Positions 42,796 to 57,300 of a stretch of 64,000 nucleotides of DNA are shown in pieces (positions within the stretch are counted from its first letter, which is position 1; each line of letters opens with the position of its first letter). Location of the stretch: assembly GCA_964199315.1 (NCBI GenBank), contig OZ116703.1, positions 310,001-374,000 of the forward strand. The letters are read 5' to 3'. The stretch is from Orbicella franksi (taxonomy: Eukaryota). Both the position numbers and the translations under genes were made by a program. The notes under the pieces were generated by a model, which made no database searches, was not told the origin of the DNA, and saw nothing but the letters and a program-made list of their open reading frames with translations.

Positions 42796-45700
42796 TTAAG
42801 TTCCAAATCTTGTGTCCACTGCAAACACAGCGATAAGAGTAATAACGACTGAGATGAGAAACAGCCAAATAAAGAATCTGTTGAGGACATTCGCAGCTAG
42901 TACCCATTCCTCTCTAAGTTCATCCGTCTTATCTTGTTCTTTGACGTTGTCAGCTAGGATTTTGACCGCGCGGGACTCGGCTACAGGGAGTTCAGACTTC
43001 TTTTCTTGCAACGCTGTCAAATAAAGTAAACAATTACAGTTCTATAGATTACATTGGGGACGGTAAGTAACTGGTGATGATAAAAGTCATCTATCACAGG
43101 GACGATTTGCCGAAATTTAACTGGACGCAAGGTATACGCCATTAAGAGACTTTCAATCATTCCCCGTCATGCTAAAGTGATTGTACAAACAGTGATTAGC
43201 ATCTTACGTTTTCTCCACTTGTTCACTACTCTCCGTGCAACCTTCTCGTTTTCTTCATTCCGAGGGTTCGACTGTGCTTTTTTGTGTGACGTCGTTTCTT
43301 GTTCGGCCTTTTCTTGTCCGGTTTTGTAGAAAACAATTCGCGCCAAGTAGCCCAGTATGTATTTCTGAAAACGAATACCAAGAGTGAACCGTCGAGGAGT
43401 ACTGGTAGTTATTTTGAATTGCATGCTTGTCCATTACTGGTATATTATCTGTTTTCTTTACTCACCCGTTTCCAGACTGGCAATGCGCATGGCCGGTTGT
43501 GGACAAATCGCAGCACGTAACACATTGCAGCAAGTGACAGGGACACCTCTATTATTGTGGAGCAGTAGTATTTACCAATCAGTGGAAGGTTCTCAGAAAC
43601 TGGCATTTTTTCCTCCACCATTAAGAAAAATACCGCAAGAGAGAGCAGAATTGTTACTCCGACTGCCATCCGCTCGCCAGTATCTGAAATTGAAATTGAA
43701 TGACATCGTTACAAACCTTTGCTCCCAAAATAACAAAAGAGCGCCTATACGACCGACTAGCAAGTTAGCTTGACTGACTGACTGACGGACGAACGGACGC
43801 ACTGCCTAACAGACCGCCTGACGAACGGACTGACTGACTGGTTGGCTGATTAGCTTACTGGTCGACTGTCTGACTGTCTGACTGGCATACTGACTGAATG
43901 ATTGACTGTCTGACTGACTGCCTGACTGACTGACTGACTGACTGATTTCTGTCTCTGACTGATTGACTCACTGATTTACTGTCTCACTGACTGGTTAGCT
44001 GATTGGCTTACTGGTTGTATGGCTGAATACTGACTTATCAGAAAGGTGGCGCACACTATTTAGGAGCTGATGCAGGCAGTGGATATGAGGAAACATCCCT
44101 AACCTTCAGGCATTAGAAATACTAGAAGAGTCAACACAGCGATCAGTGCGCACGGTGTGATGAAATTCGTGACGTAAAATTGAGACAGCCGCCTGATGTG
44201 AAGAACATACGACACTCCAGACACCATCGCTTTGCAACAGAAATGCGACATGAGGCTTTGTTCAGATCGAGCATTGATCAGCTGCCATTCTCCGTTAGCA
44301 AGGTATTGCTGAGTGGAGACAGTGTCACTAGCTGCGTTAATGTTTAGCTTGGTAATGTCGTAGTTCCATGATCCGAATGTTAATTTGCACATCTGAAAAA
44401 GAGATTTGATTTAACCGTCAATGCTTCTTACTGCTTCTTAGTATTTTAAAATTAGTTTCGTCGAAGAAGCTGTCTTGTCAGTCAGTCAATCAATCAATTG
44501 ATCAGTCAGTCAGTCAGGCAGCCAGCCAGCCAGTCAGTCAGCCAGCCGGTCAGTCAGTCAGTCAGTCAGTCAGTCAGTCGGTCAATCAGTTAGTCAGTCG
44601 GTCATTTAGTCAGTCAGTCCGTCCGTCCGTCAGTCAGTTAGTGTGTCTGTCTATCTGTCTGCCTGTCATTCAGTCATTGAGGTTGGCAATCCTTGATTTG
44701 TTGACTAGTGTATATGACGTCAAGTCACTAACCTGTTCATCAAACGGAAAGTTCTCCACGCTTATTTGACAGGAGCTCATAGTAGTCATGGGAACAACCC
44801 ACGAAACATTCCCATCATATGTCACGGTAGCTTTGAAAGGATTTGTGTCCGAATCATCAAAGTCGGCACTAAAGAAGAAAAACTAAATCTAAAGTCTTTA
44901 TTGGGTTTGACCATGCAAGATTGGTTGGAAAATTCCGGTTTCTCCTGGTGTCAAAAGAAACGAGTGCAAAAAGTTGCTATTGATATATAGATAAGTACTG
45001 TATTCACTTAAGTTATTCAGTTGATACCTCAAGCCATATTTTAATTTCCACCGTTAATGCGGTGCATAAAACTTCTACTTCACTTGCGTCAGCTTGAATA
45101 GATACAGAACAAGTTAAGTGGGTGTAAAAGAAATTCAAGCGAAGACAGCGGCGTCCTAAGAGTCAGTCTACGTTTCAAGGATCAACAGCAAGTGCGTGAT
45201 CTCAGTCACAAGATCGGCACACTACCCTACATACATACACATACATAAACTTTATTTTTTCTCGAATTTAAGAGTAGCTATTATACATGCTAATTTTTCC
45301 AAGAGAAAAATAACAAAAGAATTTGTCACAAGGAAATTGGAACAAGATCTCGAACCCAAATCAAGCCTGTAGTCATAACCTGTGCGATGCAGATTATTTA
45401 CAGTGAGTGGGGTCTGGCTACTCTAAGCTACTCAGTAGCTGAAACGTTTTATACATGAAAGAAAAAGACAAAAAGAAACACCATCATCAGCCTATGGGTT
45501 TGTCATGTGCACCCAATCAAACTCAACTTACTTGTTGTATAAAATGATACGCGGTGTCCATATATCAGTATCATCTATGTTAATCTGTCTTATTTCGCCA
45601 TATTTTGAAGGAGTCCATCTCAGATGCATATCTCTCCAATGCTAAATAAAAAAAAAACAGTGAACTGAAATATTAAATATCCCACAAGACATTGTAAATG

Positions 45701-47307
45701 ATTAGTAATGTCTGGTAAATTATATTATGATATAAAAACACTTTCCAATCAAAGCAAATTAAGCCAATGGTTACACACATGAGATAAATTGATCATGTAT
45801 TTACTGCGATCAGCAAAAAGCCAAAAAAGAAAATCAATCGCATTTATCGTTAATTAATTTGTCCTCTTATAATAACATCCATATTATAATACATATTATA
45901 ATAACATATTAAACGAAAGAGAAAACGTTCATATGGCTTCGAATAAACAGGTCTACACACGTTAAAAAACTTACCATTTTAATTCTTACATCTAAATCGA
46001 TCTTCAGATGTTTTTCATCCTAAGGAACAGAGATAAAATAAAAATAATATTGATTAGCAAAAGCAAAAATATTACATCACATCAAACCACCAGTCAGTCA
46101 GTCAGTCAGTCGGACAGTCAGTCAGTTAGTCGGACAGTCAGTCAGCTGGTCAACCAGTTAACCAATCAGCCAACCAGCCAGTAAGTCAGTCATGTGCTAT
46201 TGGCCATTCTAAGGGATCAAACGTGTGGAGACTGGTGCGAAATTACTCCTGAGAGTGAGACTTCGAGCGCTTTACTTACTACTTTAACAATCCGGTGAAG
46301 AATCAAACTGTGCTTCACTTCTATGGTGTCATTATCATCTAAAACCGGTCTAAACTTGTTGCTGTAACGTGTAGTATTCAGAAGATATCTTGTTAGGTCT
46401 CCCTCTTGACAGTAGCAACATAGCACTCCTGTAAAGCACACAAAAGGGACATAACAACAATAATCTTTATATTCTTTCTTTCTTTATATTCTTTTTATTT
46501 GGCCCGCGGATAGCAAGTGTTAATTTATCGCCAATTAATCGAAAGTCGCGATGATATGAAGGAAGTACACAGTGATAACGTGTGGCTCCCCGGTACAAAC
46601 TCAACTCATTAGCTGGCTCATACTGCCCTCTCACTGTTTATGGTTCTCATTCCTCGTAACAGGCAGAAAACTTGGGCCCCGAGCGGGTTTTTGTTGCATT
46701 CAGTTCGGTTTACTGTGTATCGATTGGTCTGTTTGGCTTTCAAGCGATTTTTTGCTCACTCATTCAATTGAAAGTTTCAAGCTTAAGTGAAGTTTTCAAA
46801 ATGGTTATCATGTATTCATCTGGGATGATCAAGCAGCAATTATTTGGCTAGTCATCATGGCTGCTATGTGACGTCACAACAGATACATAGCTAAATATGA
46901 ATAAGACGCGAAATGAAAATGCCATCCCTTCATATTTAAAAAGAATAGTCACATGCGCTGTTACTACTCTCTATATGAACATACCTTTCTACTGTTTGAC
47001 AACAGGTTTACACCATGTTAATTCGTTGTCATTATTGCATATGGAAATTAATCAACCTTCCTTGCTAACGGTTTAGTGAAATTCTCAATGACGAATTGAT
47101 TGGTGTTAAGGTAGTCAGCCTTAGAAAGGAAAAGATGTTTGGTAGTAGACATTTTTCGCTTGCTGTTTCAGGGTGCGTGAAATAAACCACTATCTTGGCT
47201 TTGTAATAAAGAATGAATATTGATGGACAAAGTTTAACAGTAAAAACACGCTTACCTTGGAAGACGATTACAAGCCAAGCCGGATACATCTTGGTGAAAA
47301 TGTACAT
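42796..47307 (-). CDS. Nicotinic acetylcholine receptor-like (Cys-loop, cationic-type) alpha subunit A, 457 aa
   Basis: Exons 47307-47256, 46428-46280, 46019-45975 (45 nt), 45641-45532 (110 nt), 44868-44733, 44392-44104, 43683-43466, 43364-43208, 43013-42796; 1374 nt. Signal peptide, WTPRIILYNN, Cys-loop CQISVENFPFDEQMCKLTFGSW, vicinal CC, M2 GERMAVGVTILLSLAVFFLMVEE, M4. Confidence 0.9.
43771..44035. repeat. Degenerate (ACTG/TGAC)n tetranucleotide array in nAChR-A intron 6
   Basis: For example CTGACTGACTGACTGACTGACTGA at 43922-43945. Confidence 0.9.
44477..44676. repeat. Degenerate (CAGT)n array in nAChR-A intron 5, reverse complement of the intron 6 array
   Basis: For example TCAGTCAGTCAGTCAGTCAGTCAGTCAGTC at about 44550-44579. 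Confidence 0.9.
46091..46192. repeat. Degenerate (CAGT)n array in nAChR-A intron 2
   Basis: CAGTCAGTCAGTCAGTCAGT at 46091-46110. Segment 46149-46177 is an inverted copy of 43838-43866. Confidence 0.9.
46868..46877. promoter_or_regulatory. CRE palindrome GTGACGTCAC in nAChR-A intron 1
   Basis: Perfect 10-bp palindrome. A second TGACGTCA lies at 44715-44722. Function untested. Confidence 0.25.
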
Positions 47308-47845
47308 TTTTGCTTCAAGAATTCCGCCAAAAACACAAGCATTGAATGAAACATATTTTACTACAGTCGTGTTACGGAAATTGCTCAACGCCGCATGTTA
47401 ATGAACAGAATGGCTCGAGAGAGCTGTTCAGTGCAGGTGGCAAGCCACTATTATGGTTCACAAATAAATAGCAACGACCAAACGAGTGAAAACACGATTT
47501 ATTATTGATTAGAACTTGTTATTTAAATATTCAACGTACTCTGCCATCGCTTGTAACATTTATTTAATTAAAACTTAATATAAATGCCTTCATCTTTGAA
47601 TAATCATTGTCTAAACCCAAATTAAAAACATTAAGCTATTCGTTTCTGTATATTGTGTAATTCATGTTCATATGTCTACCCTAGGAATTGATAGCCGACT
47701 TCATTTCCCAATGTGATAGTGTTCAAATATATAACCGTTCTCCCAAATAAACACTGTTATTGTTGGGCCAGGTTCCATGTGTTTTGAGCTTCTCTAAACC
47801 GTCAGTGTCCAAGTTGGGTTGGCGAGAATCCGCTTTCCCGTTAAC

Positions 47846-54389: not shown

Positions 54390-57300
54390 TTACAACGGAG
54401 CCTGAAAAAATATGGCCATGAACGATACGACAACAGCAAAGAGAAACACCCAAATACAGATATGGTTCAACACCAGGGCTGCCTTCCTCCACTCGTCCCG
54501 CCTCGCTTCCAGGATCATTTGCTGTCGGACGTTATCAGCCAGGATCCTATTGGCGCTTTTCTTGTCCCCTGGCACGTGACCACCGTTCTTGCTGCTTTTT
54601 GATTGGTTAATTCCGTTTGTTTCCTTGGCAACCAGGATTTCCTTATCATTCACTGGAAAGTAAATTACATTGGTAATAAATTAGGTTGGCACAATGCTAC
54701 AGCAGATCGTTTTTTAAACAAATATTGCAAAAGCAAACGATATGGAATGCTGTCAGTCACGGAAAAATGTATGCGTAAGGCAATTATGATAAGTTTTTAT
54801 TTGCGAAGAACAAAATTCTGTTATTTCATACGTTGAATCACATTGTAAGGGCTTGTGTGGCACATAAGGAGCTTAGGAAGTGCAAAAAATACGGTTGTAC
54901 ATATTACATGCAATCAACTTTCCTTATTTAAAGCAACAGATATTAAGTAAAATCGATAAAAGCGTGGTAGATTAAAACACGACTCGTTTTTTTGCGTTCA
55001 CTGGTGCATATTATGAGTAGAATTTACTTCAGTGTTGGTAAGCTGCCGAGGATGTGCACACTTCTTTGGCTCAGAAGAGTTAAGCATTTTCTTAACATGG
55101 TTATTTGGATAAAAGGTAATTACGTTTTTGACCGGTGATACTTTCTGCTGAAGAAACGTCACTTTCCTGTGAAGCATCGCTTTGAGAACTACTGTTCCCG
55201 AAATTAAATCGACACAGTTTTGCTCCATAACCAAGAAGATAGACCTGTGGATTACAGAGTAAGAATGAATAAAATATGTAAACCAATGAGCATCAGGCAA
55301 TTTCTGGCGATGCTAGTAATCTAAATCTCAAGAAAAAGCTAGGTCCTTTGAACAAGATTATCCCACGAACGCACCTTGACCCACTTGGGAACCTCTCCCT
55401 CAGTTGGGTTCTGATGATGAAAACGTAAAACCCAGCACGTCATAAAGAATGCACAAGACACTTCAATCATTGTCACAGTGTAATACATTCCCACCAGCGG
55501 TACTGCTTCGGATGTGGCTGGCATGTTTTCAGCCACAAGTAGAAAGAAGAAGCTCAGGCCAACAAGAATCGCCATTCCTAAGATTAATAAACAGATCATT
55601 ATCAAACTGATTGCAATTCTGATGTAGGACAATCATTTGCAATACACCATCACTTCGTAATAATGGTGGCATTGCAATAAAATCGCATGTCTATGGTGCA
55701 TTTACGTTAACATTTTCTTGGCGAAATAATCTTTCATGTGTAGAGATTGTAATGAACTCGAGTATTTATCAGTTCTTTCAAACTCCCTCGTGTGTTTGCG
55801 TAACGTTATATTAACACAATGTGATCAAAGTTTCTTTTTATTGCTGTCAAACGTAGCCATACACAATAAAACTTCAATAAAGCTACTGAGCAGCCACTCA
55901 AAGTGTACGTTACATATTTACCATTTCATTACACACTACACAGCACAGCCTTACCAACTGTCATTCTCTCGTTGCAGTCTGGAGGTAACAGGAAAACCAA
56001 CAATGTTAAGACAGAAATCATGGCACAGGGTATTATCAAATACATGGCGTAATACAACGCCCGCCGCTTAATCTGCACTCTGTAGGTGACGTCATGATAG
56101 GGGTCAGGACAGCACGTGTAAATAATGGAATTAAATTCTCCGGGGACCCCCAATAGTTCCCACTCCACACTGGGAGAGTACTCGGTCAGGTCTGCTGACG
56201 GACTCTGACAAAATAAGAAATGATATATGGCACTTTAAGCCGGTTATGATATCAAACAGTTTGTGAAACAACAGGCGATATTCCTGGCTAGATGGCTTTG
56301 ATCCTGCATATACTAAACGCTGATTCAGAGATTAATTAAATCGATCAATCAATCGATCTTTGTTTATAGAGGGTAAAACACGTAATAGTTATACAACTAA
56401 TAAACTTGTGTTCCTCCAAAATATACAGTAATCAAAAATCTATTACAAAACCTATGTAAAAATCAACCTATTTTGCAAGAGTGTTTTCGTCCTCTCTAAT
56501 CTAAGGGAAACTCTCTCTCTCAAGTTACATCTATTAAATAAACATAATAGCATTTACTTGGGTAATTTACCTCCAAGGTCAGGGCTATTCCAGCTGCATC
56601 GTAAGTCCAGGAGCCGAATTTAAGCTCACAGTTCTGTTGGTCAAACGGATAATTATCCACCCGTATCTTACAGCTGCTTTCAATGATTGTGGGCACGTTC
56701 AGGCTGATCAGACCATTGTTTTTGATAACAGCTTTTGTTCGTGTCATGCCGTTGCCAAAGCCTTCTCCAGCACTGAAAAATGATTGGATGGATAAAGACA
56801 GACATGAACAGGATTAAAATGGATTTCGGAGTGATTCACTTCACGGATAATTTTCGACTGCACAAAATTCATCAGTGAAGTGGGAGGCGCGCAATGCATT
56901 AAGGGTGAAACTGGGCCTTTAAGATCACTTCATGAACAGCGAAATTCCCAGTAAAAGGTGAGCGCTTAAATGTATTTGGAAATATATAGTTTTAGAATGT
57001 TCGTTCATTTTAGGAGTTACGTTGTACAGATAGACACCAATCTTGACAGTACAACACTAGGTTGAAAAGACTATCAACAGGCGAAGTCAATTGAAACTAC
57101 CGAATGTTAAAATTCACTCACTTGTTATAAAGCACAATGTCAGGGATCCAAATCGTTTTTGGATCAACACTGATGTACTTCACTCCACCATACTCTGAAG
57201 AATTCCACCTCAAGAATGGGTCCACCCAATACTAAATAAAGATCGAATTTCATAATCAATTTATAATTAACTTCTTGTGCAGTCAATGAGCAAGAAGGTT

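Follow-up and report, generated by a model that had tools for sequence, protein, structure and literature searches.

Three arrays of a tetranucleotide repeat, one of them inverted relative to the other two, lie within 2.4 kb in the introns of one gene of the stony coral Orbicella franksi, a gene whose domains and motifs class it as a nicotinic acetylcholine receptor (nAChR)-like cationic subunit of the Cys-loop type. The gene occupies 42796..47330 on the minus strand of the window, by which is meant the whole stretch of DNA analyzed, 64,000 nucleotides in length (contig OZ116703.1 of assembly GCA_964199315.1, positions 310,001 to 374,000); unless another sequence is named, coordinates are those of the window. 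The arrays are probably compound, degenerate (ACTG)n microsatellites that have spread locally among the short introns of this gene and that persist as mutational by-products in a transcript with canonical splicing. A sequence-only reading of the window had proposed that they constitute an evolved competing-pairing switch. Although the anatomy described in that reading stands, the differing ages of the parts and the dominance of one pairing leave an evolved three-way switch without support.

In the orientation of the pre-mRNA, intron 2 (46020-46279, 260 nt) carries a degenerate (ACUG)n array of ~100 nt near its middle (46091..46192), and intron 5 (44393-44732, 340 nt) carries ~200 nt of (ACUG)n interspersed with ACGG, GCUG, and AUUG variant units (44477..44676). 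Intron 6 (43684-44103, 420 nt) carries ~265 nt of (CAGU)n with CCGU, UCGU, and CAGA variant units (43771..44035). All three features are assigned to the minus strand and were delimited by Tandem Repeats Finder and by pattern search. On the plus strand, the program recovers period 4 in each case: unit TGAC in 56.5 copies with 66% matches at 43771-43993, unit GTCA in 41.5 copies with 82% matches at 44477-44642, and unit CAGT in 13.8 copies at 46091-46145, from which a degenerate tail reaches 46192. The longest perfect run, 28 nt, lies within the intron 5 array (44551-44578). Relative to the arrays of introns 2 and 5, that of intron 6 is reverse-complementary, which confirms the strand assignments of the sequence-only reading. 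Its further statement that no such arrays occur elsewhere in the 64 kb, the second receptor gene (nAChR-B) included, is likewise confirmed, as all 49 matches to (ACTG)4 at up to two mismatches fall inside the three arrays, with 0.05 expected by chance. Period-4 units, thousands of matches in the genome, and a length and set of variant units that differ among orthologs identify the three arrays as compound, imperfect microsatellite.

That the arrays look locally copied rather than independent is suggested foremost by a 25-nt variant motif, CTGGTTRGCTGATTRGYTWACTGGT. At up to one mismatch, this motif has three matches in the 497-Mb genome, all of them in the receptor gene: one in intron 2 (46153..46177, minus strand) and two, inverted with respect to it, in intron 6 (both plus strand). 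The first intron 6 copy falls in a 29-nt stretch (43838..43866) that is identical at 25 of 29 positions, in inverted orientation, to 46149-46177, as had been noticed from the sequence. The second (43991..44015) lies 153 nt from the first and occupies the position of the single copy present in orthologs L048 and L056. Even at three mismatches, just five further, weaker matches are found elsewhere in the genome. A motif that is unique in the genome and common to the arrays therefore points to local templated copying, beyond slippage in place, and the earlier suggestion of copying gains support from its confinement to introns 2 and 6. A block-shuffle test, in which unit composition is kept while unit order is scrambled, is consistent with this: array 2 and the reverse complement of array 6 have unit order in common (p = 0.02), the corresponding comparison for array 5 is marginal (p = 0.047), and arrays 2 and 5 show no common order (p = 0.45). 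Outside the tetranucleotide tracts, comparison of the three introns revealed no homology. The ACGG/CCGT blocks common to introns 5 and 6 were also considered as evidence of copying and were dropped, as the same blocks occur in the unrelated arrays L038 and L041. At G000:C8:15116822-15117218, two copies of a related variant motif, CTGGTTGACTGATTGACTAACTGGT, are separated by 372 bp, in what is another internally duplicated array.

Orthologs found by searching with exon 6, in contigs from public metagenome and sequencing-run assemblies, indicate that the arrays are of unequal age. Where an array is present in an ortholog, its position and orientation are those of the window. L056/L048 (92% DNA identity over exon 6) have the intron 5 array and the intron 6 array, the latter with the motif, and L063 (also 92%) has both of these arrays as well; the intron 5 array of L064 agrees in position and orientation with that of the window. 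In L057 (87%) and L061 (77.5%), the intron 6 array is present and the intron 5 array absent, and L055 (73%) has neither. On a tree of exon 6, the window, L056, and L063 form one clade (support 89/88) with L057 as its sister and L061 and L055 outside. The intron 2 array is absent from L056 and L069, the two relatives that cover intron 2 (L069 is 89% identical over exon 2, its exon 6 lying outside the contig). In both, the first 83 nt and last ~25 nt of the intron align with the window, and the middle is unrelated AT-rich sequence; the age of this array is thus based on two orthologs, an exon-2 protein search having yielded a single relative.

Because the arrays are nested on the exon-6 tree, the three-array arrangement is lineage-specific, and the simplest history suggested by these sequences would have the intron 6 array as the oldest; the ancestor of the closest clade would next have acquired an opposite-orientation array in intron 5, and the lineage of the window alone would last have acquired that of intron 2. 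The conservation asked for in the sequence-only reading, that orthologs keep arrays of opposite orientation, thus holds for introns 5 and 6 of the closest clade and fails for the intron 5 array beyond it and for the intron 2 array in both relatives that cover its intron. Parts gained one after another give no support to the competing-pairing switch as it was proposed. In L063, intron 6 (700-1296) has grown to >650 nt and contains successive CAGT, CCGT, CCAT, CGTT, and CATT blocks, all on one strand, which shows how rapidly compound arrays of this type change.

A plausible route to this arrangement begins with the array in intron 6. The intron 2 array would probably have arisen through inverted copying of the nearby array of intron 6 during repair or replication, with slippage reshaping the copy afterward; template switching or break repair using the nearby array as template is a candidate mechanism. 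The arrays would then have been tolerated as by-products in short, permissive intron DNA. One consequence would be an imperfect duplex of ~140-170 bp between introns 5 and 6, with a perfect core of 24 bp, by which low-level back-splicing or editing of exon 6 may be possible. Any such effect is a potential of the sequence only, and not a demonstrated or conserved regulatory switch.

Splicing of the gene, as far as it can be followed in RNA, is canonical. Read-level evidence comes from one polyA RNA-seq run (X24), in which a junction was listed at >=3 reads and isoforms below ~30% would escape. Raw run X22 contributed no reads. RNA contigs of another run (X1) contain unspliced pieces at exon depth, maybe from DNA or nascent RNA, and were left unused as evidence. 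X24 contains seven canonical junctions, for introns 2-8, with 4-11 reads each. At this low power, it shows no skipping of exon 6 or of exons 3-6. No back-splice joint is seen at this depth, in a library whose polyA selection disfavors circles. No cryptic splice site within the arrays is used, and no cluster of A-to-G differences appears, with zero reads over the arrays themselves. Scattered T>C differences outside the arrays either occur in every read or are found in DNA contigs too and are therefore attributable to single nucleotide polymorphisms between closely related corals rather than to editing. As a weak test, these reads give no support for non-canonical products rather than refuting them, so the circular RNA (circRNA), skipping, or editing that had been envisaged as the output of the arrays is unsupported. 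The resemblance of CUGAC in (ACUG)n to a branch point, and of GUCAGU in (CAGU)n to a 5'-splice site, was considered and is likewise unsupported, as no junction uses either. A search of the literature on coral circRNA and on microsatellite-driven circRNA found nothing specific. In DNA contigs of a close relative (X19, <1% diverged by share of words in common), assembly breaks at the perfect cores while including degenerate parts of the arrays.

A different issue is what the arrays could do in the pre-mRNA, and here the predictions are strong. Introns 5 and 6 contain inverted arms of 176 nt that are 74% complementary, with a longest perfect complement of 24 nt, and introns 2 and 6 contain arms of 100 nt that are 78% complementary, with a longest perfect complement of 21 nt; in control intron pairs, the longest perfect complement is only 7-9 nt. 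Folding in silico of the 906 nt that reach from array 5 to array 6 loops exon 6 out at -355 kcal/mol (z = -11), and the duplexes score z = -21 for introns 5/6 and z = -11 for introns 2/6. The arrays are therefore mutually complementary and can, according to these models, form a long imperfect duplex. Both the perfect duplex of at least 24 bp foreseen in the sequence-only reading (for introns 5/6) and the strong folding of the two intron pairs on which it proposed to be judged are thus recovered. Its claim that the two pairings compete fares less well. In the minimum-energy fold of the 2,596 nt from intron 2 to intron 6, array 6 forms 139 bp with array 5 and only 5 bp with array 2. The array 2:array 6 pairing (90 bp) is predicted only with array 5 blocked, at a cost of ~100 kcal/mol. 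Competition is accordingly modeled as thermodynamically one-sided, with intron 5 the outright winner.

The principal alternative to neutral by-products is that the arrays form a functional RNA element. In this explanation, the intron 5:intron 6 duplex draws the splice sites of exon 6 close to each other, and the product is a circRNA of 289 nt, a skip that shifts the frame, or a substrate for ADAR, in each case lowering receptor output, with the intron 2 array acting as a lineage-specific competitor. It is unlikely, although less so than any other alternative considered. Inverted complementary sequences are indeed present on both sides of exon 6 (44104..44392, minus strand), as would be found at a circRNA locus dependent on intron pairing. 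The lengths of 289 nt for exon 6 and 580 nt for exons 3-6 together, which had been stated from the sequence, are confirmed by junctions and translation; both are 1 mod 3, so both hypothetical skips are frameshifting. In addition to the strong predicted pairing, short introns and a perfect core of 24 nt speak for the element, and in minigene work by Liang and Wilusz and by Zhang et al., both of 2014, repeats of 30-40 nt reportedly suffice for circularisation. Furthermore, the inverted pair in introns 5 and 6 is kept in three coral lineages with perfect complementary cores of 23-28 nt and duplex z of -9 to -21, whereas L057 and L055 have no such core and a duplex z of about 0 to 1. The insect nAChR transcripts that had been invoked as context serve as analogy only, the gene being that of a coral; the RNA runs in which the stretch occurs bear the label coral metagenome.

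Several observations argue against a functional element. X24, at its low power, contains no skip, back-splice, or editing signal; the arrays were gained stepwise, and more distant orthologs have the gene without them. The competition on which a switch would depend is one-sided in silico. Identity between the window and L048 in non-array intron sequence is ~82%, so over the same distance retention of the intron 5/6 pair needs no selection: with ~18% neutral intron divergence among the lineages that bear the pair, its retention does not go beyond what neutrality predicts. Because slippage renews perfect runs, the kept core does not by itself show constraint. Finally, the genome has inverted array pairs at other places too. 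When 5 kb on each side of 20 other (ACTG)n loci was inspected, four were found to have a second, separate array, where ~5% would be expected from density, and two of these four second arrays are inverted (L038, at 3.65 kb, and L041, at 1.8 kb). These repeats therefore tend in general to cluster locally, inverted partners included, and the receptor triplet is an extreme case of this tendency rather than an object of another kind. The two opposite-orientation loci lie at L041:4800-6850 (G000 C1:11.12 Mb) and L038:1200-5100 (C1:10.23 Mb). In L041, the first array begins directly after a donor-like site, ..TTTGGTAAGT, and on this ground the genome may have further introns with inverted array pairs. 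The most committed form of the functional explanation holds that a microsatellite-built intron 5:intron 6 duplex, kept in at least three stony-coral lineages, acts on the transcript of a neuronal-type receptor by driving circularisation of exon 6 or double-stranded RNA editing or decay, an effect that the intron 2 array would tune in one lineage. This is more doubtful still.

Four points weigh against regarding the arrays as locally copied, neutral by-products. The perfect complement of the intron 5/6 pair has persisted in three lineages despite differing array lengths and variant units, for which either slippage or selection for pairing could account. Each of the two arrays gained later is oriented so as to complement intron 6, an outcome with a chance of 1 in 4. 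The copying mechanism is conjectural, and the source in intron 6 and the copy in intron 2 are just 78% alike. Lastly, the RNA test is weak for the reasons of selection, depth, and listing threshold given above, and none of its reads lies on the arrays.

That three independent microsatellites came together in one gene by chance, each having grown from a proto-repeat in its own intron, is improbable. ACTG is an ordinary cnidarian motif, and intron 5 of L057, which is without the array, has a short ...ctgacgtatgg... stretch where the array of the window starts, a possible seed. The frequency of the repeat in the genome nevertheless speaks against such a coincidence. In-phase exact matches number 12,043 for (ACTG)3, 4,529 for (ACTG)5, and 2,821 for (ACTG)6; extrapolation from the places listed (~19 distinct loci per 100 (ACTG)3 matches and ~35 per 100 (ACTG)6 matches) gives roughly 1,000-2,300 loci, i.e. 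one per 0.2-0.5 Mb. The reversed pattern provides no real control for these counts, as it falls in the reverse-complement repeat family. This density agrees with the published cnidarian mean of 3.1 ACTG loci per Mb (Ruiz-Ramos & Baums 2014, PMC4226868). With random placement, at most ~0.2 triplets within 2.5 kb are predicted per genome even under the laxest definition (perfect core >=12 nt), a figure that leaves some room for coincidence, but the 100-265 nt of the arrays far exceed this threshold. Three arrays in one gene are thus not chance, and (ACTG)n is not so common that three per gene would be expected, the circumstance in which the sequence-only reading would have fallen. Nor would independent growth explain the 25-nt motif, unique in the genome, that introns 2 and 6 have in common, or the unit order common to array 2 and the reverse complement of array 6.

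Least likely is that a transposable element carrying the microsatellite, such as a miniature inverted-repeat transposable element (MITE), a short interspersed nuclear element, or a Helitron, was inserted three times: repeat-carrying MITEs are said to be known in other marine invertebrates (DTC84 in a clam, for example) and in a DNA run the word depth over part of the intron 6 array is very high, but that depth is accounted for by generic (ACTG)n words, no target-site duplication is present at the intron 2 site in comparison with array-free orthologs, and the lack of similarity among the three introns outside the repeat tracts, together with the lack of other copies of CTGGTTRGCTGATTRGYTWACTGGT in the genome (<=1 mismatch), disfavors a transposon origin.

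Reverse-complementary intronic repeats promote back-splicing in several settings, including Alu pairs in mammals, short inverted repeats in minigenes, and reverse-complementary matches in Caenorhabditis elegans. Such repeats are reportedly the subject of studies by Jeck in 2013, by Zhang and by Liang and Wilusz in 2014, and by Ivanov in 2015. The receptor gene resembles these systems in having inverted complements in the introns that flank an exon, short introns, and a predicted duplex that loops the exon out, and the upstream repeat in intron 2 could in principle compete for pairing. It differs from them in that its arms are degenerate tetranucleotide microsatellites rather than copies of a transposon, in that X24, a low-depth polyA data set, contains no back-splice junction, and in that the arrangement is young and confined to a small clade. 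Hyper-editing by ADAR in inverted repeats is said to have been described across Metazoa, a coral included, by Porath et al. in 2017. As in the long intronic double-stranded RNA on which ADAR acts, an imperfect duplex of >100 bp is predicted within one pre-mRNA; unlike favored ADAR substrates, the A of ACUG is preceded by G, a context that ADAR disfavors.

Comparison with the compound microsatellites of cnidarians (PMC4226868) is closer in some respects: the ACTG unit and its ordinary density of a few loci per Mb are the same, and, as in other arrays of the genome, ACGG/CCGT variant units are present and length differs between related species. The receptor gene departs from them in having three arrays in 2.4 kb, one inverted, with a variant motif found nowhere else in the genome.

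Even if the arrays are neutral, they provide a clean, dated case of a microsatellite array seeding inverted copies in neighboring introns (intron 6, then 5, then 2). The outcome is ready-made intron complementarity without a transposon, which bears on the raw material for circRNA intron pairs in genomes that lack Alu-like elements. Should the duplex indeed drive circularisation, editing, or decay, slippage-prone repeats would have created, and could rapidly adjust, an RNA-pairing element in a cnidarian. Should pairing act on splicing, the gene would count among the early examples of back-splicing driven by repeats in this phylum, with a strength quickly changeable by slippage.

The host gene was delineated from Pfam matches (Neur_chan_LBD and Neur_chan_memb on five exons), a continuous translation, and RNA-seq junctions. 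All of its exons lie on the minus strand. An upstream ATG exon near 47300, matched by a loose RNA-seq end at 46430, is taken as exon 1 and is followed by exon 2 (46280-46430). Exon 3 (45975-46019, 45 nt), exon 4 (45532-45641, 110 nt), and exon 5 (44733-44868, 136 nt) are each defined by the continuous translation and by junction reads in X24. Exon 6 contributes the second of the two Cys-loop cysteines, the vicinal CC found in loop C, and M1 (Neur_chan_LBD, E = 6e-10; junctions 44392>44733 and 43683>44104). Exon 7 (43466-43683) encodes M2 and M3, and after exon 8 (43208-43364), exon 9 encodes M4, with a stop near 42796. Introns 3 (45642-45974) and 4 (44869-45531) are free of arrays, and introns 7 (43365-43465) and 8 (43014-43207) complete the set; introns 2 through 8 are all bounded by GT..AG and spanned by X24 reads. 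In the translation, a C-x13-C Cys-loop is split across exons 5 and 6 (CQISVENFPFDEQMC), FCCK lies in loop C, and TGERMAVGV precedes M2. The Cys-loop of this spacing, the vicinal CC, and the TGER ring before M2 together lead to the assignment of the gene as an nAChR-like cationic subunit.

Most paralogs have a quite different organization, being single open frames of ~380-450 amino acids, without introns, in tandem clusters (G000 C1:24.45-24.61 Mb, C12:17.49-17.62 Mb, C3:6.61-6.67 Mb, and C6:25.41-25.45 Mb). The gene studied here retains an ancient pattern of 45-nt and 110-nt exons and is without a close paralog. The nearest one reaches 51% identity across exon 6, and with most of the others intronless, comparison among paralogs is uninformative on the arrays. 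The second receptor gene of the window, nAChR-B, matches exon 6 at 55983-56198 with only 36% identity and is without ACTG-type arrays.

Two further observations concern intron 4. A short ACATAC microsatellite and its flank (45226-45370) reach a word depth of ~2,855 in the DNA run X19, compared with ~200 nearby, and have many loose ends; this segment looks like a dispersed repeat or a transposon fragment. In addition, X24 polyA reads cover much of the intron at a depth close to that of the exons and carry fixed differences relative to the window.

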